A stretch of 64,000 nt of DNA. Source: Dendrobates tinctorius. Taxonomy: Eukaryota. Location of the stretch: contig NW_027361700.1 in NCBI RefSeq assembly GCF_039654945.1, positions 27,280,001 through 27,344,000 on the forward strand, given 5' to 3'. The translations under genes were made by a program, and so were the position numbers. Below are positions 47,001 through 63,288 of the stretch, in pieces. Within the stretch, counting starts at the first letter, position 1, and every line of letters begins with the position of its first letter. The notes under the pieces were generated by a model. The model worked only from the letters and a program-made list of their open reading frames with translations, ran no database searches and had not been told where the DNA came from.

Positions 47001-47769
47001 CCTCATGTTTTATATATGCCACAGATCAAGATGTAATGTGAAAAAACAAATAACCTTCACATTTTTTAAAAAGCTTAAATGAAAAAAAATCTGAAATACT
47101 AGCACTGATTTGACTTCATGCCGAGTTATTTTATAGTACAGATTATTTTTTTCTCACCTGAGTTTTCAGATCTTCAATTGTTTGAAAATATTGGCTGTAG
47201 TCTTTGGATCCTGTACTAGTGGATCCTTGCTGATTCTTATCATACCAGTCCTTGATTTTTGCCTCAAGGTCTGTATTTGCCTCTTCCAAAGCATGAACTT
47301 TGTCCAAATAAGAGGCCAGGCGGTCGTTTAGGTTTTGCATTGTTTGCTTTTCATTTCCAGAGAGTAAGCCATCATTTCCACCAAACCCACCACCGGTGAC
47401 ACCTCCCCCAAAGCTTCCACCAGCAGAGCCTCCTCCAAAGCCACCAGATCCAAAACCTGCCCCAGAGCCACCAGAGCCAAAACCTCCACCAAAACCACCA
47501 GATCCAAAGCCTCCTCCAGAGCCAACACCGAAACCACTTCCTGAGCCGCCACCAAAACTACCTCCTGAGACGGCACCACCAAATTGTCCTCCTGGTCCTC
47601 CATTATATCCATCGGTAAAACATGCAGCTCCCTGGCCACTACCAAAGCCTAAACCACCACCGCGTTGCTGTCTATAAGATGAACTGCTGACACTGACATT
47701 ATAACTAGAAGCAGAAGTAGAACCGTAACCCCTGCTAACCCCTCCACTACTTCTATATTGATTTGCCAT
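37965..47769 (-). CDS. Type I keratin gene B, 8 exons, 620 aa, with an extended Ser/Gly/Thr/Ala tail
   Basis: join(complement) 47158-47769, 46460-46542, 42720-42876, 41649-41810, 41441-41566, 39985-40196, 39485-39900, 37965-38059 = 1863 nt, in frame, GT-AG introns; LNDRLASYL and [22 protein letters not shown] motifs. Confidence 0.95.
38095..38450. repeat. Degenerate (ACT/ACC)n low-complexity tract in keratin B intron 7
   Basis: Trinucleotide-periodic composition. Confidence 0.7.
38848..39246 (+). mobile_element. Penelope-like non-autonomous insertion with inverted arms and hammerhead-like core
   Basis: 14-bp TSD TGCAGCCAAAGAGT (38834-38847, 39247-39260); palindrome 38956-39248; TGACTAA-stem-GAAACGC motif at about 39096-39135. 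Confidence 0.75.
39485..39900 (-). CDS. Keratin B exon 7 (expanded low-complexity tail)
   Basis: 416 nt, open, phase 2 in and phase 1 out like exon 7 of the paralogues; AG at 39901-39902, GTAAT donor. Confidence 0.87.
39985..40196 (-). CDS. Keratin B exon 6
   Basis: 212 nt, ends TYQKLLEEG, donor GTAAA. Confidence 0.94.
40530..41003 (+). mobile_element. Old L2 LINE 3' fragment
   Basis: Similar to 18053-18686 (RLQDIS..PILWN); ends AAATAAATAATAATAAT. Confidence 0.75.
41441..41566 (-). CDS. Keratin B exon 5
   Basis: 126 nt, [11 protein letters not shown]...LQSQSAM. Confidence 0.94.
41649..41810 (-). CDS. Keratin B exon 4
   Basis: 162 nt, [21 protein letters not shown]. Confidence 0.95.
41982..42428. 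mobile_element. T2/Kolobok-type MITE
   Basis: TTAA|AGGGAATCTCTCAGCAG ... CTGCTGACAGATTCCCT. Confidence 0.75.
42720..42876 (-). CDS. Keratin B exon 3
   Basis: 157 nt, [14 protein letters not shown]...YLKKNHEE. Confidence 0.95.
42903..43106 (+). mobile_element. V-SINE (tail continues at about 45119)
   Basis: A box TGGCTCAGTGG, B box GAGTTCAAATCC, V core; homologous to 35752-35993. Confidence 0.85.
43729..44960 (+). mobile_element. Non-autonomous Helitron with minisatellite
   Basis: A|TCTAATATATAAAGCT start; hairpin GCCGGGCAGCGCCGGGC then CTAG|T; removing it restores the host inverted arm exactly with no TSD. Confidence 0.92.
44158..44893. repeat. 41/43-bp G-rich minisatellite, about 17 copies
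   Basis: GACTATGGGATGGAGGATRTGT(AT)GATGGGTATATGGGCA units. Confidence 0.95.
45403..46285 (-). mobile_element. Possible further Helitron-derived composite with GT-rich minisatellite (45945-46130)
   Basis: A|CTAGATGG at 45403 resembles a Helitron 3' end on the minus strand; 5' TC end not clear. Confidence 0.35.
46460..46542 (-). CDS. Keratin B exon 2
   Basis: 83 nt, [27 protein letters not shown]. Confidence 0.95.
47158..47769 (-). CDS. Keratin B exon 1
   Basis: 612 nt from ATG (MANQYRSS) to donor GTGAG. Confidence 0.95.
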
Positions 47770-50687: not shown

Positions 50688-50748
50688 TTAATACTATTGT
50701 TTTCTGTACATAGAATATCATTGTTCTCGGCAGCACATATCCTGCTTA

Positions 50749-51185
50749 GGCTAGCTTCACACTAGCGTATGACCGAGCTGTGGAGGGCTGAGAACGTCCT
50801 CCGTGAAGCTCAGCCCACGGCCACACCTCCTCCGGTCAGCTCCACCTACGTCGGCATGCGGCCTGCGTACGCTATCTTTAACATTAGGTACGCAGGCCAT
50901 GCCGATGTATGCGGATGCCTCTGCATGCATCATTTTGAAGGTGCAGCGACCGCAACAAAATGCAACTCGTTGCGTTCGAGCGGTTTTCCGCACAGTCAAA
51001 ATGATGCATGCAGAGGCATCCGCATACATCGGCATGGCCTGCGTACCTAATGTTAAAGATAGGGTACGCAGGCCGCATGCCAATGTAGGTGGAGCTGACC
51101 GCAGGAGGTGAGGCTGTGGGCGGAGCTTCACGGAGGAAGTCCACATCTCTCAGCAGCTCGGCCATACACTAGTTTGAAACTAGCC
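50749..51185. mobile_element. PIF/Harbinger MITE, near-perfect 437-bp palindrome
   Basis: TTA TSD; GGCTAGCTTCACACTAG / CTAGTTTGAAACTAGCC termini. Confidence 0.9.
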
Positions 51186-51311
51186 TTACACGAGCATATT
51201 GGTGCATTTGTTGGATAATTGGCGGCCTAAAAAAAGAGAGAAGAGCCAGCACTGCCAGTGGTCAGAACGCATAACATGAGGTGCATATGCACATATCTTA
51301 CTGCATTCAAA

Positions 51312-51384
51312 ATGAGACATTTAGCAAAATATTGATCAATATATTGAGCCACCCCGCCACGTCAAGGCAATCTCATATGGGGGG
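51312..51384 (-). ncRNA. Putative HDV/CPEB3-like ribozyme (inverted copy)
   Basis: Reverse complement of the same motif. Confidence 0.6.
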
Positions 51385-52056
51385 TCCTACTCTACATTTT
51401 TATTTATTCAATGTGCCATTGTGGCCTCCTAAATGTTTTAAAAGCAAGACCATATCAAATGCAATCCATACCTGAAGCATATCTGCATCACTCCCGTGCA
51501 GCCAGATGGAGCAGGTGCAGATAAAAGCCAACCAGGTCTGAACACAGACATCTCAGGTTTGACCTCCACACACTGCCCAACCAGCAAACACAGATGAAGG
51601 GCAATGCAGGCTCAGACATGGATGCAAAAATAAATAAAGCCTGGGGCAGGGCGGGCTCTTCTCTCTTTCTATTGCAAATTGGTTTTGTGGCTGACCACCA
51701 CTGTTGCCGTGCACGCTGGGTCATGTTCGCCATCTTTTCTGTGTTTATTGTGATTGATCTAGGCTGCTGTGCACACTCACGGCAGCCCCACCCTGCCCCA
51801 GGCTTTATTTATTTTTGCATCCATGAATGAGCCTGCATTGCCCTTCATCTGTGTTTGCTGGTCAGGCAGTGTGTGGAGGTCAAACCTGAGATGTCTGTGT
51901 TCAGACCTGGTTGGCCTTCATCTGCACCTGCTCCATCTGGCTGCACGGGAGTGATGCAGATATGCTTCAGGTATGGATTGCATTTGATATGGTCTTGCTT
52001 TTAAAACATTTAGGAGGCCGCAATGGCACAGTGAATAATAAAAATGTAGAGTAGGA

Positions 52057-52129
52057 CCCCCCATATGAGATTGCCTTGGCGTGGCGGGGTGGCTCAATAT
52101 ATTGATCAATATTTTGCTAAATGTCTCAT
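52057..52129 (+). ncRNA. Putative HDV/CPEB3-like ribozyme (monomer 1; L3 UUGGCGU)
   Basis: Same fold, 540 bp upstream. Confidence 0.6.
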
Positions 52130-52596
52130 TTTGAATGCAGTAAGATATGTGCATATGCACCTCATGTTATGCGTTCTGACCACTGGCAGAGCTGGCTCTT
52201 CTCTCTTTCTATTGCAAATTGGTTTTGTGGCTGACCACCACTGTTGCCATGCACGCTGGGTCATGTTCGCCATCTTTTCTGTGTTTATTGTGATTGATCT
52301 AGGCTGCTGTGCACACTCACGGCAGCCCCGCCCTGCCCCAGGCTTCATTTATTTTTGCATCCATGTCTGAGCCTGCATTGCCCTTCATCTGTGTTTGCTG
52401 GTCAGGCAGTGTGTGGAGGTCAAACCTGAGATGTCTGTGTTCAGACCTGGTTGGCCTTCATCTGCACCTGCTCCATCTGGCTGCACGGGAGTGATGCAGA
52501 TATGCTTCAGGTATGGATTGCATTTGATATGGTCTTGCTTTTAAAACATTTAGGAGGCCGCAATGGCACAGTGAATAATAAAAATGTAGAGTAGGA

Positions 52597-52669
52597 CCCC
52601 CCATATGAGATTGCCTTGACGTGGCGGGGTGGCTCAATATATCGATCAATATTTTGCTAAATGTCTCAT
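52597..52669 (+). ncRNA. Putative HDV/CPEB3-like self-cleaving ribozyme (monomer 2)
   Basis: P1 CCCCCC/GGGGUGG, P2 AUGAGAUU/AUGUCUCAU, P3 GCC/GGC, L3 UUGACGU, J1/4 CU, P4 hairpin, J4/2 CUAA; folded by eye. Confidence 0.65.
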
Positions 52670-52890
52670 TTTGAATGCAGTAAGATATGTGCATATGCAC
52701 CTCATGTTATGCGTTCTGACCACTGGCAGTGCTGGCTCTTCTCTCTTTCTATTGCAAATTGGCGGCCTACTGCACATCCTACTGTCTCTGGAAATTCAAA
52801 GATTTACCAGACATTTTAAAAGCTAGGGAGATCAGTCTTTTTGTTATCTTTTCACAGAATCAATATGTACATATTTAAACAGACCCTTAA

Positions 52891-59052: not shown

Positions 59053-61908
59053 CTAGAAGAAATCTTTCATTTTAAGTTGTGTAAGGATTCGCTGGTATAA
59101 ACAGTCATGGCAACCATATAATCCATTTGACCTTGGCTAACACAATGCCTTTAGGAGATTGTATCTAATTCTTATCTAGTAGTTGTAGGAAGACCTCTGC
59201 GCTTCAGCCACACAGGTGTTCTAGGCCTTATGCTGGATAAGGGCATTTGGATGCTGCCCTCATGCCCAGCGCTTAGTTGATTTATAATGATTTCATTTTT
59301 TTAGGGGATTATAAAGCTCTAACTAGATACAAATCTTGGATACTAGTACTGCAATGCAGCCAATCTAGCCCCCCGAGCTACAGTGAGGACATTTATACAT
59401 ACATAAAACTTTCATGAATCATGACATTTTTTTTCTTTTATTTTTCTATTTTTTGGTTAAGATTTTATTTTAGTGTTGATTAGCAACTTGGTCATTTTAT
59501 TTTGACCAGCAACCTACCTTTTTTGGAGTCTACAGAAGATGTCTGTGACTTTGAAGCCTGTGAGCTCGAAACCCTTGATGCTGATGATGCTGATGCGGAT
59601 GCAGATGATGAGGATGAAGAAGTCCTGCCTCCTGAAGACTTGCTCCCTGAAGACTGGGAGAGTTGACTGTGGGATGAAACATTTATAATTAAGACTTTTT
59701 GTATTCTTGAAGAAACATGAAATTATGCAATCAAATATTCAATGGCAGGTCTTTGAAGATGAGTTAGTGCTGTAGCTGACTAATAAATACTATGTTAGAC
59801 CATTTTTAACCTAGTGTTACTTCTAAATAAACACATATGGCCCGCCATTATGCCTCTTCACAGTTTTTGCATCACTTGTGCGTACCCCAGTTCGCCATCC
59901 AGCAGGCGTCTATATGTTTCAATTTCCATTTCCAATCTGGTCTTGATATCAAGAAGTTCTCTATACTCTTGGCTCTGTCTCTCCATGTCTGCTCTGATCT
60001 GGAGCAACTGGTCCTCAATTCCGCTAATAACAAGCTGGATCTGTTGCAGTTGTACTCCATAGCGGCCTTCAGTCTCAGCCAGGGTGTCTTCAAGGGATTT
60101 TTTCTACAATTGGGACATTGCACCATTACACATTTTACATGAAATAGCGATAAGCCAAAAATTAACAGATTCTTAACCATATTAACTGGTTTTGTTAATG
60201 TCATGTTCAAAATTATATTTTAGATATTATGAAACATCTTGGAGATAAACTTCAAAATTGCGTTGGAAAATGGTCTTCTACTGGAAGATGGCCAACATAT
60301 ATAGAATATTATAGAATTCGTTCCATAAGGGATTGGTTTTCTCAAAAAAGTAGTCTTTTGGAGAAGTTTAATGTTAATAGATGTCATTATATTGTTATTA
60401 GTGTATGTTGTATTTTATACTAAGTATATTGACTTACCATTGCCAACTGTGACTGGAGTTCAATCTCCAGTCCTTGGAGAGTACGTCTGAGATCGGAAAT
60501 TTCTGACTTGCTTGTCTGCACCTGTTCCACACCAGCTGAAATTTCCTTCTTTAGTTCATTGCTCTGGAATAGGTCAACATGTTTTATATTAGTTTGCTAG
60601 AAAGGGCAACTTAACCTTAATGATAAATGTATGAATCATTCTCACCTTTGAGTTGAACCATGCCTCTGCATCTCTGCGGTTCTTATCTGCCAATGCTTCA
60701 TAGTCTGCTCTCATGTCATTCAGAAGCTTAGTGAGATCCACACCTGGTGCAGCATCCATTTCCACGTTCACTGTTCCAGCAGCGCTGCTCTTTGCAATCT
60801 GCATTTCCTGTTCATTAAAATATTAGAAGTTAGATCTGGGTCCTGTTCTGCCCCTATCTATTTTGAGGTCTGCTGACACATAGCGATGGTAACTGCAAGA
60901 GTTAGGATCCATCCTGATTGGGTACATCTTGTCGTGGTGGGATGTCTTTCACGCTTTTTTGATCTTACTATAGGGTATTTAATCATTTTTTATCCTATTA
61001 TATGGTATTTGATCATTTTGTTTATATGCTAGATTTTTTTTAATGTGCTAAATACATGCAATGTATTTCTAGCCTGGTCTTTTAGACAGATATGTAACTA
61101 TGAGGTGTGCCGAGATATCACTCAGACCAAGACCTTGGTACCAGAGGAGCACCAGAAGCCCTTCTGCTATGTTAGAAGACACTAATAAAACAAATGGAAC
61201 CAGGTAAGTAAGAAGTCAGGTTATAGGTTTAAGATTGTGGTTAGTAAGGAAGCTGAAAAAAAATGCTTATGTCTATAGGTTGGAGAGGATCATTTTTCCA
61301 AGATGTCTTCTGTTGAATTTTGGAGATAAATAGGATGAGGACTATAGTTCAACTGGGAGAAGATACATTTGTACAATATTTTTCCATAATATCACAATTG
61401 ATCAAATTATCAGTATGATGCTTGTATTCCAATTTGTCCATTTGCTCATTCCCTATGAAAGGATATATGATCTGAAGTAAGGCCTACCTCTTCATGGTTC
61501 TTCTTCAGGTAGGCCAACTCTTCAGACAGGCTCTCAATCTGGATCTCCAAGTCTCCTCTGGCCAGGGTCAATTCATCCAAGACTCTGCGGAGTCCATTGA
61601 TGTCAGCCTCCACACTCTGGCGGAGAGCCAGCTCGTTCTCATACCTTGCATAAAGTAACAAGACATTCAATATATGCAATAAAAAAGCATGTAGCAAACA
61701 ATGCAATGCCATCCACAAACCTTCCAACCAATATAGATTTCAGTAACCAGACATTTTGATATTAAAAAAGGCGCTCGCTGGAAAAAAATAAAAAAAGCAA
61801 GTTTTCCACAATGGGTTCGCCCCAAAACAGAACCTTTCCAATAATTAAAGTGTATTATTAAATTACTATATGACCACATGATTGTAGATGTGCCAAATAG
61901 GAAGGTTA

Positions 61909-61957
<49 letters not shown>

Positions 61958-63288
61958 GCTAATCTTGAATCCTGTGCTTTGTCCTGACTGCCATTTTACT
62001 AGGGGGCCATGTGTTATAAAGGTAATATGGAGCCACCAGTCTTTTTATGTAGCTACAACTCCACATCTCCATGAAATGAGATCCAACATTGTGTTACCCA
62101 CTGCCTATGCCGTTATGTATTAAGCAATGGCTTGAAGATATTAAAGCCACTGCACTGCTTGACAAGGAGCATTGTTCATCATAAATTATTTATTTGGAGA
62201 AGCCTAAAGACTCTTTAACAACATATATTATCGATACAGGTGTCAGAAATTAGATTAAGTTGATGCTTGATCTTACTTCAGTCTGAAGTCATCAGCAGCC
62301 AGTCTTGCATTGTCGATTTGGAGGACAACACGGGAGTTATCAATGGTGGCAGCCAAGATCTAGGGAAAAAAGACAAAACAAAAGAGCATACATTACAATT
62401 GATCTAGGGTTACTGGTTAACAATGTAAGGAGTATTTATGCAGGTCTGAAATTTTCTGAAATACTGAAAGGTGCACCTAATTGATGAGTCGATGAAACAG
62501 ACTGTTTTTGTATAGACAACATTTACAAAAGAAATATGCCAGCATGGCTGTGATCTCAGTACACGGAAATGTGATGTGAAGTTAATCTTGTGGTTAGTTA
62601 TAGTACAGCAATAACTTAATCTGCTAATGCTTTAGGGCTTATTGTTTCTAACATTAATTAATGGCAGATTGATAGTATAGGCTTATTATTTAAGCACAAA
62701 ATAGGTAATCAGTAATGTTCTGAAATATTTACAATGTTTTGATAGCTAATATCTCAGAAAAACAATTAACAGTACCTTGCTCCTCAAGTCATTGATGGTT
62801 TCATAGTACTTGCTGTAGTCTTTGCCGGGTACACCTACTCCAGAACTAAGTTGTTTCTCATACCAGTCTCGGATCTTCACTTCCAGCTCACCATTGGCAG
62901 CCTCAAGAGCTCTAACTTTATCCAAGTAGGAAGCCAGGCGGTCATTGAGGTTTTGCATGGTCTGCTTCTCACCTGCACCAAAGGATCCAAAGCCACCACC
63001 TGCTCCTCCACCAAAGCCGCCAGCTCCTCCACCAAAGCCACCAGCTCCTCCACCAAAGCCACCACCAAAGCCACCAGCTCCTCCACCAAAGCCACCAGCA
63101 GAGAATCCACCAGCAGAGAACCCACCACCGGATCCTACAGCAGAGCCCAAGGAGAATGCTCCACTGGATCCACCACCATAGCCTCCACCAAAGCCTCCTC
63201 CATAGCTGCTACCACTGAAGCCACCTCCATAGCCCCCAGAACTTGAAACTTGATAGGATGATGCGGAGCTTCCACGATAAGAGGACAT
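58952..63288 (-). CDS. Type I keratin gene C, 8 exons, 502 aa; resembles Xenopus XK81 / 47-kDa (krt12-like) embryonic-larval keratins
   Basis: join(complement) 62776-63288, 62277-62359, 61488-61644, 60646-60807, 60438-60563, 59886-60103, 59518-59666, 58952-59052 = 1509 nt, in frame. Kozak GCCACCATG; N-terminus [10 protein letters not shown]; tail [24 protein letters not shown]. Subfamily assignment is from recalled similarity. Confidence 0.96.
59518..59666 (-). CDS. Keratin C exon 7
   Basis: 149 nt, Ser-rich, ends SVDSKK, AG/GTAGG. Confidence 0.9.
59886..60103 (-). CDS. Keratin C exon 6
   Basis: 218 nt, [23 protein letters not shown]. Confidence 0.96.
60438..60563 (-). CDS. Keratin C exon 5
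   Basis: 126 nt, [11 protein letters not shown]...LQSQLAM. Confidence 0.96.
60646..60807 (-). CDS. Keratin C exon 4
   Basis: 162 nt, [21 protein letters not shown]. Confidence 0.96.
61488..61644 (-). CDS. Keratin C exon 3
   Basis: 157 nt, [14 protein letters not shown]...YLKKNHEE. Confidence 0.96.
61912..61951. repeat. (TA)n microsatellite in keratin C intron 2
   Basis: About 20 TA units. Confidence 0.95.
62277..62359 (-). CDS. Keratin C exon 2
   Basis: 83 nt, [27 protein letters not shown]. Confidence 0.96.
62776..63288 (-). CDS. Keratin C exon 1
   Basis: 513 nt, ATG 63288 in GCCACC context, donor GTACT. Confidence 0.95.

Follow-up and report, generated by a model that had tools for sequence, protein, structure and literature searches.

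A putative HDV-like ribozyme motif, probably of the L1Tc subtype, in the units of a tandem retroelement of Dendrobates tinctorius

The window analysed here is a stretch of 64,000 nucleotides of Dendrobates tinctorius (NCBI RefSeq assembly GCF_039654945.1, contig NW_027361700.1, positions 27,280,001 to 27,344,000 of the forward strand). It contains, at 51229-52756, an insertion of a non-coding retroelement composed of 540-bp units, each bearing a compact motif that lies ~85-160 nt upstream of the element 3' end. Ribozymes resembling that of hepatitis delta virus (HDV) are known at the 5' ends of long interspersed nuclear elements (LINEs), and hammerheads in Penelope-like elements (PLEs) and retrozymes. 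The copy flagged at 52597-52669 is probably an HDV-like self-cleaving ribozyme motif of the subtype represented by L1TcRz, the ribozyme of the trypanosomatid retroposon L1Tc. The segments of this copy and the two other copies in the window are given below; the letters are read directly and the helices are assigned through homology with sister families.

52597-52669, + strand: flagged motif copy, putatively HDV-like (L1Tc-type)
52597-602 (CCCCCC) with 52626-632 (GGGGUGG), + strand: P1, U52630 bulged
Between the P1 5' strand and P2, + strand: J1/2, AU
52605-612 (AUGAGAUU) with 52661-669 (AUGUCUCAU), + strand: P2, U52662 bulged
52613-615 (GCC) with 52623-625 (GGC), + strand: P3
52616-622, + strand: L3, UUGACGU
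G52618-C52633, + strand: P1.1, with the joiner CU
52635-656, + strand: P4 hairpin
52657-660, + strand: J4/2, CUAA, with the candidate catalytic C52657
Between A52596 and C52597, + strand: predicted cut
52057-52129, + strand: second motif copy, one 540-bp unit upstream, with the family-majority L3 UUGGCGU
51312-51384, - strand: third motif copy, inside an inverted 5'-truncated unit, identified by core match and descriptor

Every segment that the original prediction had placed at this locus is borne out by the letters of the window. Three occurrences of the 22-nt core GCCTTGACGTGGCGGGGTGGCT lie in the window (52613 on +, 52073 on + with one mismatch, and 51368 on -), where chance would give none. 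A structural descriptor, comprising a P1 with at least five of seven pairs, a 3-bp P3, a 7-nt L3, a Watson-Crick P1.1, P4, C-N-R-A and a P2 of at least 6 bp, was written post hoc after the candidate had been seen and loosened just enough to include it. Within the window, this relaxed descriptor returns the three motif loci only. In 40 dinucleotide shuffles of the window, the yield per shuffle is 1.2 loci if L3 is left free, 0.025 if L3 is set to U.[GC]..G. and none if it is set to UUGNCGN. Taken alone, the contrast is only suggestive. A chance resemblance inside a repeat would draw on the first of these rates for a 64-kb window, and is opposed by the rates that remain once the L3 letters are required. 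Nested-only minimum free energy folding of the motif, a method blind to pseudoknots, gives nothing distinctive (z = 0.13).

Pattern searches trace this core through no fewer than eight lineages of repeats in the genome. The core pattern TTGNCGYGGNGGNNVNGCT has 2472 genome occurrences, as opposed to 58 for the reversed control, and among the few pattern matches outside the families (L086, L104, L105) none has complementary 5' strands. The family of the window element is referred to as A/B, and its sister families, with a P1 of 7 pairs, read as follows.

Family M2, older, majority sequence, at least 548 candidates: CCAUCCU GAUU GGGUAC ACC UUGUCGY GGU GGGAUGG CU [P4] CUAA GUACCC
Family C, 414-bp unit: CUGUCCC … AAGGGU U GCC UUGACGU GGC GGGAUGG CU … CUAA AU ACCCUU
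Family D: CUAUCCC … CAGAGUU ACC
Family E, seven P1 pairs: CUGCCCC AUAUGAGAAU GCC … GGGGUGG
Family F, 396-bp unit: CUGUCUC … GGGUAC ACC … GGGACAG
Family G, 417-bp unit: CUGCUUC … GGGGU U ACC UUGACGU GGU GGAGCAG

The majority sequence of M2 forms a clean HDV-like fold. Across the eight lineages, the strand order P1-P2-P3-L3-P3'-P1'-(P1.1)-P4-J4/2-P2' is kept, consistent with the double-pseudoknot order and spacing read by the original prediction. Compensatory change in P1, P2 and P3, proposed there as a check, is evident in an alignment of 30 natural copies from the eight lineages, none of them ascertained via a mutated position. P1 is 99% paired, with four of its seven pairs changing on both sides: pair 2 is UA in 13 copies, CG in 11 and UG in 6; pair 3 is GC in 12, AU in 6 and GU in 5; pair 4 is UA in 18 and CG in 11; pair 5 is CG in 21 and UA in 7. 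P3 is 98.9% paired, its first pair covarying between AU (18) and GC (11). P2 exists in two registers, and the pair next to J4/2 is kept in both (UA in 18, CG in 11), followed by one bulged U in families A, B, C, D and G. Five distinct P2 helices are present, AUGAGAU, AAGGGU, CAGAGU, GGGGU and GGGUAC, each matched by its complement. Over the whole structure, 89.6% of the cells are paired, as against 42-56% with the partners slid by 1-3 columns, and the covariation score is 0.436, as against at most 0.19 in the slid controls.

Amid these changing helices the core stays fixed. U20, U21, G22, C24, G25, G37, C38, U39, the J4/2 C and two A are invariant; L3 reads UUGNCGY throughout, and the second letter of J4/2 is U or C. 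The P1.1 pair is G22-C38 in 30/30 copies while the helices surrounding it covary, in agreement with the compensatory swap that had been proposed for this pair. A 3-bp P3 closing a 7-nt L3 with U20 and G25, P1.1, and a J4/2 of the form C-N-A-A are all present, as expected of HDV-like ribozymes; the G1-U37 wobble expected of them is absent, with C1-G37 in 27/30 copies. Freely varying helices around a fixed core are, in this comparison, the pattern of a functional ribozyme, shared ancestry notwithstanding. As judged from the aligned copies, the fold is genuine, being conserved and covarying across eight or more lineages of repeats. With compensatory changes in three helices added to the genome pattern counts, chance resemblance is exceedingly improbable and is regarded as refuted.

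Three further observations concern the motif and its relatives. In every lineage, P4 ends in a perfectly palindromic tip (UUGAUCAA, UGCGCA or UUGCAA) with runs of U and A on either side, at 52646-52651 in the window; this may amount to no more than a perfect hairpin, or the loop may be capable of pairing with a second copy. Directly before the predicted cut, 8-11 nt are kept between lineages as AGAGU(U)AGG(G)A (52586-52596 in the window, with equivalents in C, G and M2), which suggests that the upstream cleavage product has a function at its 3' end or that the structure extends further. A decayed M2 copy is also found in the window at 60909-60964 (+), continuing in decayed form to ~61056 (CCAUCCU … AUC UUGUCGU GGU GGGAUGU CU). 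This copy has U in place of G37, and a 30-bp tandem duplication (60956-61019) replaces or interrupts its 3' half.

Within family A/B, the motif deviates from its sisters in P1. The 5' strand of P1 is 6 nt long (CCCCCC), compared with the 7 nt of CUGCCCC in family E; with this base missing, U52630 bulges out at a distance of two pairs from the scissile bond. P1 thus contains six C-G pairs plus the bulge, or 5/7 pairs if aligned ungapped, and the C run ranges from 5 to 7 among copies. A P1 of seven positions with C-U and A-G mismatches was considered and dropped, since the comparison with family E favours a one-base deletion plus bulge. The irregularity of P2 comes down to the single U52662 bulged after the U52612-A52661 pair, and this bulge recurs in families C, D and G and in L1TcRz. 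The bulge or mismatch originally noted in both helices is thereby refined to a one-base shortening of the P1 5' strand and one extruded U in each helix.

The family-majority L3 of A/B is UUGGCGU (47/89 sampled copies). The UUGACGU of the window, with A at 52619, is found within A/B in only two sampled variants, which are the window's own copies; it is the norm in sister families C and G. Subfamily B is ~83% identical to A overall, has a 544-bp unit and keeps the core. Outside P4, the cores of A and B differ at 2/51 positions against ~17% over the unit, where ~9 differences would be expected, and one of the two turns a U-G into a U-A pair in P2. Conservation of the core above the background of the element, another check attached to the original prediction, is seen in this comparison of A and B, alongside the invariance of the L3 letters and the J4/2 C among the lineages.

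The motif-bearing insertion consists of two arms facing away from each other between target-site duplications (TSDs), as listed here.

51217-51228, no strand: left TSD, AATTGGCGGCCT, 12 bases, read directly
51229-51655, - strand: inverted 5'-truncated unit, unit positions ~143-540 plus the 3' end, its outer end being the element 3' end (…GGCTCTTCTCTCTTTTTTT)
51645-52756, + strand: two full 540-bp tandem units and the first ~32 nt of a third, ending at the constant 3' end (…CTCTTTCTATTGCA)
52757-52768, no strand: right TSD, AATTGGCGGCCT, the identical 12 bases

The first 6 bases of the right TSD match the continuation of the element (AATTGG), a microhomology at the priming site, and the insertion contains no open reading frame over 101 aa. 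In the 6.36-Gb assembly, a search with the unit gives 158 scored matches among 982 candidates at 97-99% identity, and the motif start with its upstream GGA has 4141 exact occurrences spaced 540-548 bp apart. The copies are scattered as arrays that range from one unit to 7 or more, with variable 5' ends and TSDs of 12-17 bp. Their 3' end is constant, …GGCTCTTCTCTCTTTTTATTG, followed by a variable distance into CAAATTGG; the 3'-terminal sequence of family A ends …GCTGGCTCTTCTCTCTTTTTATTG. This constant end combined with a variable start identifies the motif-bearing strand as the RNA sense; in support of the original prediction, the motif thus lies in sense orientation within a tandem retroelement that is non-autonomous. 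Very often the first array is met head to head by a second one, inverted and 5'-truncated, which makes the outer end on each side a 3' end of the element. Insertions of PLEs and of their non-autonomous derivatives are described as frequently 5'-truncated, with partial tandems and, next to them, an inverted copy that is itself truncated at its 5' end (PMC8557442); the insertions of this element display all of these traits, together with a constant 3' end. As in a retrozyme, non-coding tandem units each carry the motif and are dispersed with TSDs. No hammerhead accounts for the motif: Rfam, run on both strands of the whole unit, gives no hammerhead match at E <= 10.

Several insertions (L018, L024, L027, L022) combine an inverted arm of subfamily B with a direct arm of subfamily A; with arms of subfamilies only 83% identical, the two must be copied from different RNA molecules. 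In family A, 5' ends and junctions cluster at unit positions 430-440 and 463-467, a sample too small to interpret. Related copies are present in Logan contigs of two organisms (11 runs matched, four examined; none on record as RNA). GIY-YIG (Penelope endonuclease) domains are abundant in the genome, with 5686 candidates. An HDV-like core is found in none of four Penelope 3' regions examined, a sample far too small for the partner question. These four regions (L132, L134: C78:9831080…, C29:25701856…; L133, L135) contain instead a hammerhead-like …CCGAAACGCGU…CCUGAUG…, of the form GAAAC…CUGAUG, and the PLEs behind them are apparently intact, their open frames, 754-855 aa long, running through the GIY-YIG domain.

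Two neighbouring features of the window are unrelated to the motif. A 197-nt inverted repeat (90% complementary, 45-nt spacer, 50748-51186) adjoins the insertion on the left and belongs to an unrelated fold-back element. At 47401-47578 and 62987-63233 there are short tandem repeats whose reverse strand would encode Gly-rich peptide repeats, consistent with the keratin-type genes noted in the window at the first reading.

A possible footprint of cleavage at the predicted site was sought in the 5' ends of insertions. Copies with a non-consensus base (not A) before C1 were collected and the 14 upstream bases read, with single boundary positions per family as controls. In family G, 13/18 matches abut unrelated or inverted DNA exactly at C1, compared with 2/8 at the control boundary 9 nt upstream. 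These C1-start copies are mostly short, extending from unit position 3 to ~173 and thus consisting of the motif and the 3' domain. In family C, ~39/68 matches start at C1, compared with ~10/49 at the control boundary. For these sister families, the insertions preserve a record of RNA ends at the predicted site; for A/B they do not clearly do so. At the head-to-head junctions of families G and C (L096, L117 and others), the direct copy often starts at C1 and the inverted copy ends inside the motif, at P2, P3, L3 or the J1/4 joiner; it looks as if synthesis of complementary DNA often stops within the folded core.

In the proposed mechanism, the RNA would cut itself 5' of C52597, generating unit-length RNA with 5'-OH and 2',3'-cyclic phosphate ends, and a Penelope-type reverse transcriptase would start at a U-rich site ~165 nt downstream of the cut. 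Cleaved RNA as template would give short copies beginning at +1, and multimeric or circularised RNA would give multi-unit arrays. With one base missing from P1, the A/B RNA would probably cleave more slowly, or circularise after cleavage; the long arrays and the scarcity of +1 starts would be compatible with each of these.

Several points weigh against this reading. The window copy matches no HDV-type Rfam model at gathering score or at E <= 10, so that the Rfam check suggested with the original prediction came back empty; the models concerned (RF00094, RF00622, RF02682 and others) are apparently without representation of the L1Tc subtype. RF02682 does align a family F copy in the same helix register, at a non-significant 13.9 bits (threshold 44, E = 9.4). 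The lineages share ancestry, and their covariation counts are not independent events; most copies are young, and conservation within a family says little. The A/B P1 carries its bulge two pairs from the scissile bond, and we know of no described active HDV-like ribozyme with a bulge at that place. Family A/B has ~3 starts at +1 beside the 4141 exact internal copies, with 0-1 at the control boundary. Finally, a transcription start at +1 could leave an identical footprint.

This last point leads to an alternative in which the motif is a non-catalytic structured RNA throughout the superfamily, serving as a pseudoknot recognised by the Penelope reverse transcriptase, an enzyme related to telomerase, or as a Pr77-like internal promoter, with the +1 ends as transcription starts. 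Covariation proves structure and not catalysis, the Rfam result is compatible with such a role, and in L1Tc the 77 nt that form the ribozyme double as a promoter, with transcription beginning at the cut site (PMC3185411). However, the invariant letters are the counterparts of the HDV active site (U20, G25, the J4/2 C with two A, and the P1.1 pair), the spacing matches, to the base, that of a ribozyme with activity shown by experiment, and the helices vary freely, which a DNA promoter would not allow. This alternative is accordingly judged improbable, although not to the same degree as chance resemblance.

A stronger competitor concerns A/B itself, where the motif may have been inherited as a true ribozyme of the superfamily and become catalytically dead after the loss of the P1 base. 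The fold would then be kept for another reason, such as reverse transcriptase binding or RNA stability, and the arrays would arise from uncleaved multimeric transcripts or template jumping. The 6-nt P1 strand, the share of +1 starts (~0.07%, compared with roughly 1% in family G, whose copy number is estimated from the pattern count) and the length of the arrays, up to 7 or more units, all agree with it. On the other side, the core has hardly changed between A and B since the P1 base was lost, amid 17% divergence, which speaks for selection still acting on the catalytic-core letters. If the arrays were copied from linear multimers, they should also lose length each round by 5' truncation, yet the family thrives in multi-unit form; non-shrinking arrays would be easier to obtain via rolling-circle copying of cleaved and ligated monomers. 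Loss of activity in A/B is possible, though less likely than not.

The reading of the flagged segment as a copy of a self-cleaving, L1Tc-type motif remains the probable one, while cutting by the slightly damaged version in A/B is unproven; its derived P1, long arrays and scarce +1 starts could reflect weak or lost cleavage. The original prediction of a variant HDV-like ribozyme used by a frog retroelement was right in kind, and use by A/B is unproven, its P1 being degenerate and its insertions showing no +1 excess. At about even chances stands a broader proposal, namely a superfamily of HDV-type retrozymes in frogs, mobilised by Penelope machinery, in which an L1Tc-type ribozyme (C1-G37, G22-C38) replaces the hammerhead and unit RNAs are copied in linear or rolling-circle form.

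If cleavage is confirmed, the L1Tc subtype would extend from trypanosomes to vertebrates, and two ribozyme classes would be interchangeable modules in the same kind of element. The families would also provide a natural series for the effects of P1 geometry and of the cleavage-site pair, from the 7-bp P1 of E, C, G and F to the 6 bp plus bulge of A/B. Should the superfamily exist as proposed, a subtype known only from kinetoplastid LINEs would be tied to vertebrate Penelope biology, and standard HDV-like search descriptors would be overlooking a widespread subtype. For annotators, the motif is usable as a mark of several thousand repeat copies in the genome.

Among known systems, the closest relative of the motif appears, by comparison of the letters, to be L1TcRz and not the mammalian CPEB3 ribozyme. 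L1TcRz sits in the first 77 nt (Pr77) of the L1Tc/NARTc/ingi/SIDER trypanosomatid retroposons (PMC3185411, PMC4035085), and that of Trypanosoma cruzi cleaves co-transcriptionally at +1 in vitro (PMC3185411). The L1Tc/ingi ribozymes differ from those of HDV and R2 in how the G-C pairs of P1 are oriented and in the make-up of P1.1 (PMC4035085). Parsed by eye, the 77-nt sequence (PMC1874656) reads CCCUGGC / 10 nt / ACC / UCAACGU / GGU / GCCAGGG / UC / P4 / CUAA / bulged P2. The spacing is shared with the frog motif: a P1 of 7, 10 nt of J1/2 and P2, a 3-bp P3, a 7-nt L3, a P1' of 7, a 2-nt joiner, P4 and CUAA. Also shared are C1-G37 instead of the G-U wobble, a C-rich P1 5' strand and a P1.1 of one pair that is not C-G (both compared by eye), an L3 ending in ACGU, and a P2 with one base bulged after the first pair. 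The P3 of L1TcRz, ACC/GGU, is that of frog families M2, F, G and D, and both motifs are housed in retroposons, non-autonomous ones included.

The differences from L1TcRz are equally distinct. P1.1 is A-U in L1TcRz (L3 UCAACGU, joiner UC) and G-C in the frog (UUGNCGY, joiner CU); together with the C-G of HDV, these pairs read as a compensatory series. L1TcRz occupies the very 5' terminus of a poly(A)-type LINE or short interspersed nuclear element (SINE) in a kinetoplastid host, whereas the frog motif lies inside every Penelope-style tandem unit of a vertebrate, and the P1 of A/B has just 6 pairs plus a bulge. Because L1TcRz is active without the G-U wobble, neither the missing wobble nor the swapped P1.1 argues against activity, and G1-U37 is not defining for the wider class. 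The lack of the wobble, listed as atypical in the original prediction, is real in that C1-G37 is present, yet it has an active precedent. Likewise, the combination once thought undescribed belongs to a subtype already described in L1TcRz, of which the frog motif is a variant.

With CPEB3 and HDV, the motif shares the nested double-pseudoknot order, a 3-bp P3, a 7-nt L3 with U20, C24 and G25, and a catalytic C opening J4/2 (CGAA in CPEB3; GCUAA in antigenomic HDV, as given by the first reading), and with CPEB3 also the weak one-pair P1.1. Their G1-U37 and C22-G38 contrast with C1-G37 and G22-C38 in the frog, and CPEB3 is a single-copy intronic element, not a repeat. CPEB3 had been taken as the nearest likeness; the family-majority L3 and the L1Tc sequence led to its being dropped, for the similarity in L3 rests on an A that, among the family variants, is seen only in the window's own copies.

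The LINE-borne HDV-like ribozymes (R2, RTE and others) and drz-Fpra (RF02682) process retroelement RNA from a longer transcript, to which the +1-starting copies of families C and G may be compared; they have G1-U37 and a C-G P1.1 and occur once per element. In the literature on HDV-like ribozymes in connection with retrozymes, Penelope pLTRs, amphibians and Xenopus SINEs, hammerhead-based descriptions only were found, and no paper was found to place an HDV-like ribozyme in each unit of a vertebrate Penelope-style tandem retroelement. The animal non-LTR (long terminal repeat) retrozymes and the pLTR ribozymes of PLEs (PMC7229834, PMC7761336, PMC4209133, bioRxiv 10.64898/2026.07.22.740005) resemble the frog element in their dispersed non-coding tandem arrays, in the motif near the element 3' end and in their amphibian hosts, and PLEs resemble it in 5' truncation, partial tandems and the adjacent inverted copy (PMC8557442). 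All described ones use type I hammerheads, whereas the frog motif is HDV-like; their units measure about 150-300 bp, compared with 400-540 bp in the frog, and circular RNA has been demonstrated for the hammerhead retrozymes. The position of the motif near the 3' end is, by analogy, the one at which PLEs and animal retrozymes carry their hammerhead. In conclusion, the element looks like a retrozyme bearing an HDV-like ribozyme in place of the hammerhead.
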